In this document: positions 33,931 through 60,886 of the stretch, one piece after another
Layout: each line of letters starts with the position of its first letter
How positions within the stretch are numbered: position 1 is the first letter of the stretch
Source: Tubulanus polymorphus
Taxonomy: Eukaryota; Animalia; Nemertea
Assembly (NCBI RefSeq): GCF_964204645.1
Contig: NC_134034.1
Location: 1,798,072 to 1,862,071, forward strand
Direction of reading: 5' to 3'
DNA: 64,000 nt
Notes under the pieces: model-generated
The model's database searches: none
What the model was told of the DNA's origin: nothing
Seen by the model: the letters and a program-made list of their open reading frames with translations, nothing else
Program-made: the position numbers and the translations under genes

Positions 33931-34231
33931 AAGCAGGGGTCAATAGGGTCATGGGTCACCTTCTCGTCAGTAGTGCCATGTAGCGGAGGTTATTGGTATT
34001 CAGTAGATGAAATTTAATATCGCCAAACATATCATGAGATGCTGCAATATTCCCTAAATGTTCATGGAATATTTGTCAGGATTATTGTAAAATCATTTTT
34101 GACGAATAAAAGTAATTTTCAGAATAACAAGTGCATTAGATTCATTTATTGGTAGATTTATATAATTTGAACACCGGTCACATATCGACATGGTCAGTCG
34201 TATATATCAAAATGGCGAACATTATGTAAGC

Positions 34232-34726
34232 ATACTTACCTGGCACAGAGGTCCACCGTGATCTGAAACGGAACAGCCAACTAACTTAGATAAACGAGTA
34301 ATATATTTCGGCTTGCCTAGACAGATAATTAGAAATTCAAAAAATAGACATATATGTAATTATGTAATAACAGTTCTAAAATGGACACTGTACAAAAATC
34401 ACCGTAAATCATGTGACGGGGAACAGCAAATAGATCTAAAAAACTATGCTAGGAATTATATTGTAAATAGATTAAAACAAGAGATTGCACACAAAAAGAA
34501 CATACATTTGTGGACCCAAAATGAATCCCTAATTAAAATAACTGAAATGGAATTGGTAATAAATGAAATACTACTCGATACAATTTATGATATACTGTAA
34601 GCTTTGTATACTATGTACTACGTATATTATTAAATACTATGTATAGTATGTTTGTGTATTTTCCGACATGAATAATGTATTATTGATATATATATATATG
34701 TATATATATGTATATATATGTATGTG

Positions 34727-34785
<59 letters not shown>

Positions 34786-35310
34786 ATATGTATATATATG
34801 TATATATATTTATATATGTATATATGTGTATATGTATGTATATATATATATATATGTATATGGACTTGTTAATTCTGTAAATGTGTATATATTGAAGAAT
34901 GATAGACTATTTGATAACGATGTCTAGTATGTAAATAGGATTCTGTACCGATAACTGTATATAATTTTTCAAAATTTTAAGAAAAAAAACAAAAGCAATA
35001 TAAAAAAAAGATAAAAAATACTGAAAAAAAGGAAAAAATGTTAAAAAAGAACGAAAATTTTTTATATCCTATTTGGAAAGAGTAGAACAACCTAAAATGA
35101 AAAGAGATAACAGTTATTTAAGAACTTTCCCTCTCGGTCGTAAGGTGTTCTTACACCTAATACACGGAGCTAGAGGTGATTTTTTTTTTCTTTTTAAACT
35201 GCATATTCTCGCTACAATCATGTAACAATATCAGTCCCCCACATGACTCCAGTGGGTGCGATGTAGATGTAATGGAGCTTTCCATTAGATAATAAAGTAA
35301 GATAAAAAGC

Positions 35311-35354
<44 letters not shown>

Positions 35355-35494
35355 ACCGTGATCTGAAAGGCGGTACCTCTATGGCGAGGCCTGTCATTGC
35401 ACAAAGACTGGTTGACCCATACGATCTCCCCAAATGTGGGAGACTCGGGTGTACAATTTCTGGTAGTGGGGGACTGCGTACGCGCTATCCCCTC
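34232..35494 (+). ncRNA. U1: U1 snRNA gene interrupted by a retrotransposon (5' part 34232-34268, 3' part 35369-about 35494)
   Basis: Starts ATACTTACCTGG; stem-loop I CCGT-GATCTGAAAG-GCGG; loop II ATTGCAC; Sm site AATTTCTGG; terminal stem GGGGGACTGCGTACGCGCTATCCCCT. Removing the insert and one TSD copy gives about 163 nt. Confidence 0.95.
34269..35352 (+). mobile_element. 5'-truncated non-LTR retrotransposon (L1/Tx1-like) inserted in U1
   Basis: 16-bp TSD CCACCGTGATCTGAAA at 34253-34268 and 35353-35368. AATAAA at 35291 followed by an A38 tail (35315-35352). Open frame from the 5' junction to TAA at 34600 (LDKRVIYFGL...ICNYVITVLKWTLYKNHRK...HLW) resembles an L1/Tx1 ORF2 C-terminus. The 3' UTR contains a (TA)n tract. 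Confidence 0.85.

Positions 35495-41641: not shown

Positions 41642-60886
<19,245 letters not shown>

Follow-up and report, generated by a model that had tools for sequence, protein, structure and literature searches.

The stretch of DNA analysed here, referred to as the window, comprises 64 kb from the nemertean Tubulanus polymorphus (C10:1798072-1862071, in a genome of 268 Mb and 77 contigs) and contains a U1 small nuclear RNA (snRNA) gene that is split by a long interspersed element (LINE). An initial annotation, made from the letters of the sequence, had described a complete U1 that was interrupted in stem-loop I by a 1084-bp insert in sense orientation, and the coordinates, the Rfam score and the recovery of a 163-nt U1 on excision all agreed with that description. 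The perfect 16-bp target-site duplication (U1 nt 22-37), the AATAAA signal and the tail of 38 adenines (A38) were likewise confirmed. The features of the locus, with distances given from the implied nick between U1 nt 21 and 22, are listed below.

34170..34175, plus strand: U1 promoter, box AACACC resembling the proximal sequence element A (PSEA), 83 nt 5' of the nick
34201..34207, plus strand: U1 promoter, TATA-like box TATATAT, about 31 nt before U1 nt 1 and about 51 nt before the nick
34232..34268, plus strand: left fragment of the U1 snRNA gene, nt 1-37, by sequence comparison
34253..34268, plus strand: first copy of the target-site duplication (U1 nt 22-37), an exact 16-mer
34269..35352, plus strand: LINE copy of subfamily A, 5'-truncated, 1084 bp, sense to U1; copies 97-100% identical to it extend upstream into open reading frame 2 (ORF2)
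34269..34600, plus strand: what is left of ORF2, its last 110 or so codons with the stop at 34598-34600; the C-terminal part of the 1087-aa ORF in copy L049 is identical
34686..34861, plus strand: (TA/TG)n microsatellite in the 3' untranslated region (UTR) of the element, by TRF; it varies among copies, where blast alignments break
35291..35296, plus strand: polyadenylation signal AATAAA, by sequence reading
35315..35352, plus strand: A38 tail, by sequence reading and TRF
35353..35368, plus strand: second copy of the target-site duplication, an exact 16-mer
35353..35494, plus strand: right fragment of the U1 snRNA gene, nt 22-163, by Rfam (RF00003, 87.3 bits) and blast

The 16-mer CCACCGTGATCTGAAA occurred only twice in the window, at 34253 and 35353, exactly bracketing the insert. 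The Rfam score of the 3' part of U1 (87.3 bits) was well above the cut-off of 69.5 bits, and when the insert and one copy of the repeat were excised in silico, a U1 of 163 nt was restored. Both marks of a functional U1 gene, a complete U1 after excision and an snRNA-type promoter upstream, were thus found. Because the U1, U4 and U5 genes read in this genome share the upstream boxes at equal spacing, and U2 has a variant of the first box, the interrupted U1 is evidently a real, promoter-bearing gene. The possibility that the target was a retropseudogene was considered and ruled out by the snRNA-type promoter boxes upstream.

A genome-wide blast search matched the first 412 bp of the insert with 100% identity at four other places and with 70-93% identity at several more, and about nine near-identical copies of its 3' part were present in the genome. 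The near-identical copies run on upstream of the window junction into a long ORF, so the copy in the window is 5'-truncated. The frame that is open at the 5' junction, from EQPTNLDK to the stop, is the C-terminus of the 1087-aa ORF of the longer copies, as the initial annotation had supposed when it read an ORF2-like C-terminus there. In the longer copies, ORF2 carries the Pfam domains Exo_endo_phos, RVT_1 and zf-RVT (PF03372/PF14529 and PF00078 for the first two), and thereby combines an endonuclease of the apurinic type (APE) with a reverse transcriptase (RT) and a C-terminal zinc finger. Its best relative of solved structure was human L1 ORF2p (E 1.6e-74, residues 7-870), which settles whether the frame matches the ORF2 of a retrotransposon without long terminal repeats (non-LTR).

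Several characters place the element in the L1 group: the N-terminal apurinic-type endonuclease and the RT within one ORF2, the poly(A) tail, and 5' truncation points and duplications (0-16 bp) that vary among copies. A trait of the Tx1 clade, target-specific insertion into repeats, was also found, the repeats being snRNA genes here and U1 and 5S genes in relatives. ORF1 had no Pfam matches in this genome and the ORF1 of relatives gave weak or faint zf-CCHC matches. Cluster look-ups and a protein atlas returned only 'reverse transcriptase', mostly from chordate taxa, and no family name. The element is, to judge from these characters, an autonomous L1-group, Tx1-like LINE with an ORF1 and an APE/RT/zf-RVT ORF2.

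The whole family amounts to about 20-25 copies. The sister subfamily C, which shares about 70% DNA identity and 72% ORF2 protein identity with subfamily A, has seven long copies; in one of these, L058, both ORFs are intact (342-aa ORF1 and 1271-aa ORF2), and this is the full-length copy whose recovery had been proposed. Minor subfamilies B and D were also present. More than 15 genome matches of 47-52 nt (92-96% identity) were confined to the last 50 nt of the LINE 3' UTR, which hints at a short non-autonomous partner that shares the LINE tail.

The junctions are those of target-primed reverse transcription into the U1 gene, with a nick at 21/22 and a 16-nt stagger. The template strand of the gene was nicked between U1 nt 21 and 22, the cDNA was primed on the poly(A) tail, and a cut of the other strand 16 nt downstream generated the duplication of U1 nt 22-37. 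The nick GGT/CCACC that had been deduced from the duplication was borne out. A chance hit is excluded, because a second, 70%-identical subfamily copy occupies the same U1 nucleotide in another U1 gene.

The insert is young, since its first 412 bp are identical to those of four copies and the tail and the duplication are perfect; the view that it is a recent, 5'-truncated product of target-primed reverse transcription held up. It is also a dead copy with no useful coding content, and it has put one of about 18 U1 genes out of action. Raw reads from another individual (about 7x) were inspected at the 5' junction, away from the microsatellite and the A38 tail. The depth just inside the insert was about 8.5 and eight reads continued into the ORF2 of the longer copies, so essentially none were left to bridge the junction of U1 and insert; the reads seen came from paralogous U1 genes and from longer element copies. 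The other individual had fixed differences in the U1 upstream flank (window 33950-34300; e.g. 34047, 34187 and 34221). These observations suggest that the insertion is absent from that individual, and is polymorphic and recent, the evidence being weak at this low depth. The depth on the element was far below that of five identical copies, and the copy number of subfamily A may therefore differ among individuals.

To place the remaining copies, the flank after each poly(A) tail was compared with the snRNAs of this genome and with Rfam, which yielded about 18 analysable events in one genome. An eighth C-type copy (C7:18550407), weak U1 matches on C10, reduced-score U2 matches (C7:14020880, C7:3853011 and C7:14055551) and a U6 fragment (C4:17223690) lie outside this tally. 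Rfam at permissive thresholds gave no name for the flanks of the insertions designated X, Y, Z, W and V. The target sites are as follows.

U1, 3' flank from nt 22: the window copy; subfamily A; 16-bp duplication
U1, 3' flank from nt 22: L055, in another U1 gene; subfamily C; 13-bp duplication
U4, 3' flank from nt 22: L052; subfamily A
U2, 3' flank from nt 22-25: L056, in the U2 tandem array on C7; subfamily C; array spacing broken exactly there
U5, 3' flank from nt 24: L049; subfamily A; no duplication
U5, 3' flank from nt 25: L021/L025; subfamily A; 9-bp duplication; the pair resembles one duplicated event
U5, 3' flank from nt 25: L013; subfamily C
Locus X, without Rfam match: L054 and L031; subfamilies B and D; two insertions at one site
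Locus Y, without Rfam match: L024, with a paralogue in L053
Locus Z, without Rfam match: L058, the intact C copy; promoter-like boxes upstream
Locus W, without Rfam match: L050 and L015; apparently two insertions at one point; promoter-like boxes upstream
Exception: L051, inside a 58-bp satellite
Exception: L008, at a generic site
Exception: L057, at a site without promoter boxes
Exception: L030, in A-rich DNA

Every insertion in an snRNA gene or a promoter-type locus was in sense orientation. Copies 97-100% identical to that of the window were found in U4, in U5 (twice), in Y and in W, and the sister subfamily C was located in U1, U2, U5, W and Z. Among the nine youngest A copies, seven lay at promoter-type sites. 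About 2 of the 18 U1 genes were occupied, and U1 accounted for 2 of the promoter-type insertions, which number at least 13. The family evidently has a strong, oriented preference for a point 21-25 nt into snRNA genes.

The initial annotation had proposed a non-LTR family specific to U1, to be checked by asking whether other copies in the genome end in poly(A) followed by U1. A second U1 gene (L055) was indeed found in this state, but other copies were followed by other snRNAs and a few by unrelated sites. The part of the proposal that stands is the non-random targeting of multicopy small-RNA genes, together with the residence of 5 of 10 relatives in U1; specificity for U1 does not stand in this genome, given the near-identical copies in U4 and U5, the sister subfamily in U1, U2 and U5, and the insertions in unannotated promoter-bearing repeats, all of them about equally far from the start site. 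The earlier reading was right in kind, a target-specific Tx1-like LINE at snRNA genes, and too narrow in scope.

What many of the targets share lies upstream. The AACACC box was found at the same distance in U1, U5, X and Y, with the variants AACCACC in U4 and CACACA in U2, and aligning all events on the nick brought the AACACC boxes of U1, U5, X and Y into register. ACACC occurred 81-85 nt 5' of the nick in 8 of 15 rows, representing 7 independent events when L021 and L025 are counted once. The background frequency, estimated over 225,000 positions, was 0.8%, or 0.07% when a TATA-like box at the right distance was also required. A TATA-like box was present 49-55 nt 5' of the nick in U1 (twice), U5, X (twice) and Z. 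The bases flanking the nick (GGT|CCA, GGC|TAA, TAC|CAT, ACC|GCG, GAA|CCT and TAA|TTG) had no obligatory common motif. The distance to the promoter elements was thus constant across targets of unrelated sequence, as is characteristic of position-specific integration. Besides snRNA genes, then, the family lands about 82 nt past the AACACC box and about 51 nt past the TATA-like box in loci of the same layout.

The closest proteins in the databases were only 31-36% identical, and ten contigs that carry such relatives (L059-L068) were examined. In five of the ten (L060, L061, L062, L065 and L066) the element was followed by the 3' part of U1, with the poly(A) or the element end adjoining (CC)GTGATCA, U1 nt ~22-28. 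The duplication in L066, TGATCAGTAAG, ends at nt 37, like that of the window copy. Two relatives (L059 and L063) reside in 5S rRNA arrays with the nick at 5S nt 27/28 and the poly(A) adjoining nt 28, and the other three contigs (L064, L067 and L068) were uninformative. The contig of the closest relative, P0001, ends within its poly(A) tail. A tree of ORF2 proteins, from a quick search with unnamed database relatives as the only references, grouped A and C in one clade nested among the U1-resident elements, with the 5S pair in a separate clade. A U1-resident, Tx1-like LINE lineage thus exists in several organisms, and the element described here descends from it, with a broader target range. In L065 and L066 the U1, 5S, U2 and histone genes were linked in one repeat unit.

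On balance, the nick is probably placed by its position relative to the snRNA-type promoter or start site, about 22 bp downstream. The likeliest route would be a tethering of the element ribonucleoprotein to the transcription complex of the snRNA gene (SNAPc, the pre-initiation complex or early RNA polymerase II (Pol II)), with cutting at the downstream edge of that complex, near +20. Instead of tethering, the cut might be made at a structure produced by early Pol II, and a weak local sequence preference may act as well. The fuller proposal, in which this would be the first LINE lineage to read the Pol II snRNA-type promoter by way of a tethered ribonucleoprotein and to nick the template about 22 bp downstream whatever the local sequence, is put forward tentatively, as an account that is plausible and falls a little short of probable.

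Several observations weigh against placement by promoter position, 1) the set of roughly 18 analysable events from a single genome is small, 2) for X, Y, Z and W the start sites are predictions, and X itself is a repeat dispersed in at least 40 copies, 3) at least four copies lie elsewhere (in the satellite, at the generic site with a tRNA-Glu chimera, at V and in L030), 4) none of the U6 genes, which have a PSEA and a TATA box and are RNA polymerase III (Pol III) genes, was clearly interrupted, 5) in other species the U1-resident relatives all have their cut next to GTGATC, a conserved stretch of U1, which resembles sequence recognition, and 6) short words recur on the downstream side of the nick, U1, U5 and Y having ATCT at +9 to +12 and (A/G)TCAA lying at +5 to +9 (TCAA at +6 to +9) in U2 and U4, which may reflect a weak endonuclease preference.

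The fifth of these points also speaks for a strictly U1-sequence-specific, Tx1-like family, whose endonuclease would recognise the stem-loop I region and whose copies outside U1 would be off-target events. The five relatives cut U1 within nt 22-28 near GTGATC, with duplications that end at about nt 37-40, U1 residence is scattered over the ORF2 tree, and in this genome two independent insertions from two subfamilies chose the same U1 nucleotide. Such a family is nevertheless unlikely. Off-target events would not be expected to lie all in sense orientation at 21-25 nt past a start site, no more than 2 of the promoter-type insertions, which number at least 13, are in U1, and neither the 97-100% identical copies in U4, U5, Y and W nor the spread of the sister subfamily over U1, U2, U5, W and Z is in keeping with it.

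Equally doubtful is the view that a loose word preference of the endonuclease just downstream of the nick is sufficient, the words lying in the 5' portions of these RNAs by coincidence, and that the promoter plays no part. The words of the sixth point speak for it, as does GATCAC, which the relatives have close to the nick in their U1 as well as their 5S targets. The words were short and chosen post hoc, however, and X, W and Z lack them. Moreover, there are thousands of such words in the 268 Mb, and still 7 of the 9 young copies are promoter-proximal, and the constant distance to AACACC and TATA boxes in unrelated loci would not be expected.

A chimeric retrocopy formed by template switching onto U1 snRNA, in the manner of the human U6-L1 chimeras, instead of a gene insertion, is highly improbable for the window copy. 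The RT of the family does switch templates. In L008 (C5:19923049-19926185, minus strand) a complete tRNA-Glu with an 8-nt trailer is fused to a 5'-truncated, poly(A)-tailed element, and the whole chimera is bracketed by a 10-bp duplication, CATTAAGTAC, at a generic site, the structure of a chimeric retrocopy; the RT of the element therefore switches onto Pol III transcripts. Tx1 families with U1- or U2-derived heads have been described in crocodilians (PMC4494074), and these Tx1-Mar heads, like the U6-L1 chimeras, resemble L008 in carrying a small RNA at a truncated LINE 5' end (PMC4494074). However, the only place where template switching can attach small-RNA sequence is the 5' end, whereas the window copy is a true gene insertion with U1 on both sides: its 3' flank is U1 nt 22-163, the duplication itself is U1 sequence, and U1 promoter boxes lie upstream. 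The 3' flank and the promoter refute a template-switch origin of this copy.

Least probable of all is an assembly artefact fusing a U1 gene with a repeat, for while the junction 34268/34269 was bridged by none of the Logan contigs and by essentially none of the reads from the independent DNA run, Logan unitigs break at repeats, the run came from a different individual at 7x with fixed flank differences, the duplication is perfect over 16 bp with a complete U1 on excision, and a like architecture recurs in another U1 gene as well as in genes for U4 and U5. Even taken jointly, template switching and artefact leave very little to be reckoned with.

The proposal that the upstream U1 promoter could drive a chimeric RNA found a basis in the full-length copies, in which U1 leaders are present. 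The 5' UTRs of C copies contained degenerate U1 pieces (L058 2582-2740; L050 9165-9281). In L050, a promoterless U1 nt 1-37 is fused to the start of the C element and preceded by GACATATCG, and the same 9-mer recurs after the poly(A) of the C-element end in L015, about 10 kb downstream. Read at both ends, around some 5 kb, the pair L050/L015 probably goes back to a chimeric RNA that started in U1 and entered W whole by retrotransposition. In another organism (L061, GCA_029980105.1; 101-218), three tandem units of U1 nt 1-40 precede the element, each stopping at the duplication end, which is the pattern expected if each generation is transcribed from the U1 promoter and reinserted into U1 at the same point; every round of insertion seems to add to the leader copies. 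Transcription of full-length copies by read-through from the host snRNA promoter is well supported by these structures. Such copies would need no promoter of their own and would keep U1 nt 1 to ~37-40 as a 5' leader.

Some of the target loci had further structure. At the U2 site (L056:8200-9212), two extra pieces, each followed by a stretch resembling U2 nt 22-32, lie between the LINE poly(A) and U2 nt 22-193, and the 5' side has lost about 0.5 kb of spacer together with U2 nt 1-21; the arrangement looks like serial insertions at one U2 site. In L052 (2600-3118, compared with L039:1140-1700) the sequence upstream of the A-element ORF1 start is inverted U4-array spacer that includes an old element fragment, and the 5' junction of that insertion is therefore rearranged. 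Every unit of the U4 array carries the same old LINE fragment. The U6 match at C4:17223690-17223738 corresponds to model positions 1-47 only and could be a U6 gene cut by an insertion. Locus X (L031:1345-1466 and 1907-2010; L054) is a dispersed repeat, with at least 40 scored matches among 87 candidates at 80-93% identity, and has an snRNA-type promoter layout without an Rfam match. X may represent a family of small-RNA genes, or else a transposon that has captured a promoter. The idea that X is the 5' end of the LINE itself was rejected: intact X copies with both halves abutting far outnumber the LINE.

Among elements described previously, both Keno, of the Tx1 clade, and Utopia insert in U2 and have a flank that begins at nt 39 (PMC4640811), and Mutsu, also of the Tx1 clade, resides in the genes for 5S rRNA (Kojima & Fujiwara 2004, cited in PMC4640811, PMC4494074 and PMC3706591). 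A 2015 listing of snRNA-gene specialists has only Keno, Utopia, Dada-U1 and Dada-U6 (PMC4640811), and a 2022 paper gives the same two sources for non-LTR elements (PMC8869645). No non-LTR element targeting U1, U4 or U5 was found in the open papers searched, those of 2013, 2015 and 2022 among them (a search that did not extend to Repbase and Dfam), nor did these papers describe a U1-resident Tx1-like lineage.

The present element resembles Keno and Mutsu as an APE-type LINE of the L1/Tx1 group with poly(A) and sense insertion into multicopy small-RNA genes, and Mutsu further in that its relatives occupy 5S arrays. It differs from Keno in its target, which is U2 at about nt 21-25 in addition to U1, U4, U5 and loci other than snRNA genes, instead of U2 nt 38/39; the U2 flank begins here at nt 22-25 and not at nt 39. 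Utopia likewise has a spliceosomal snRNA gene as its target, with tandem insertion and variable 5' junctions, but it uses a restriction-like endonuclease, has the single target U2 nt 38/39 and belongs to another clade (PMC4640811). Dada-U1 and Dada-U6 are DDE transposons with fixed orientation and site that use U1 and U6 genes as safe havens (PMC3706591). They share with the element the U1 gene as a haven, the orientation and the fixed site; they differ in having 6-8-bp duplications and neither poly(A) nor RT, and the U1 site of Dada is near ATTGCAC, not at nt 21/22 (PMC3706591).

In its apparent reliance on a host-gene promoter and its target-derived 5' leaders, the element recalls R2/R1 and SLACS/CRE/NeSL, which belong to other clades and are sequence-specific for rRNA and spliced-leader targets. 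The Dictyostelium elements TRE5 and TRE3 and the yeast element Ty3 carry out position-specific integration at Pol III genes via TFIIIB/TFIIIC. As proposed for the element described here, their insertion point is set by the distance from a transcription complex and many genes of one promoter class are used, but those are Pol III genes, entered outside or at the gene start, whereas here Pol II snRNA-type genes would be entered about 22 bp inside, by a tethering that is proposed.

The window also contains, unrelated to the LINE, two tRNA-Lys(CTT) genes with identical scores, 4 kb apart, and a tRNA-Leu(CAG) gene.

43115-43189 and 47168-47242, minus strand: tRNA-Lys(CTT)
59218-59301, plus strand: tRNA-Leu(CAG)

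Target-specific LINEs serve as models of retroelements that spare their host and are under development for site-directed gene insertion. The snRNA-gene specialists known so far use one site in one gene each, U2 for Keno and Utopia and U1 or U6 for Dada. For the host, the cost of the family described here has been the inactivation of about 2 of 18 U1 genes and of several U5, U4 and U2 copies. If the nick is indeed placed by the promoter, all classes of Sm snRNA gene, and any further locus under such a promoter, would serve the element both as a landing pad and as its own promoter. Recognition of a transcription complex instead of a sequence would be undescribed for LINEs at Pol II genes, and the family would offer a natural case of a polyadenylated, protein-coding RNA made from an snRNA promoter.

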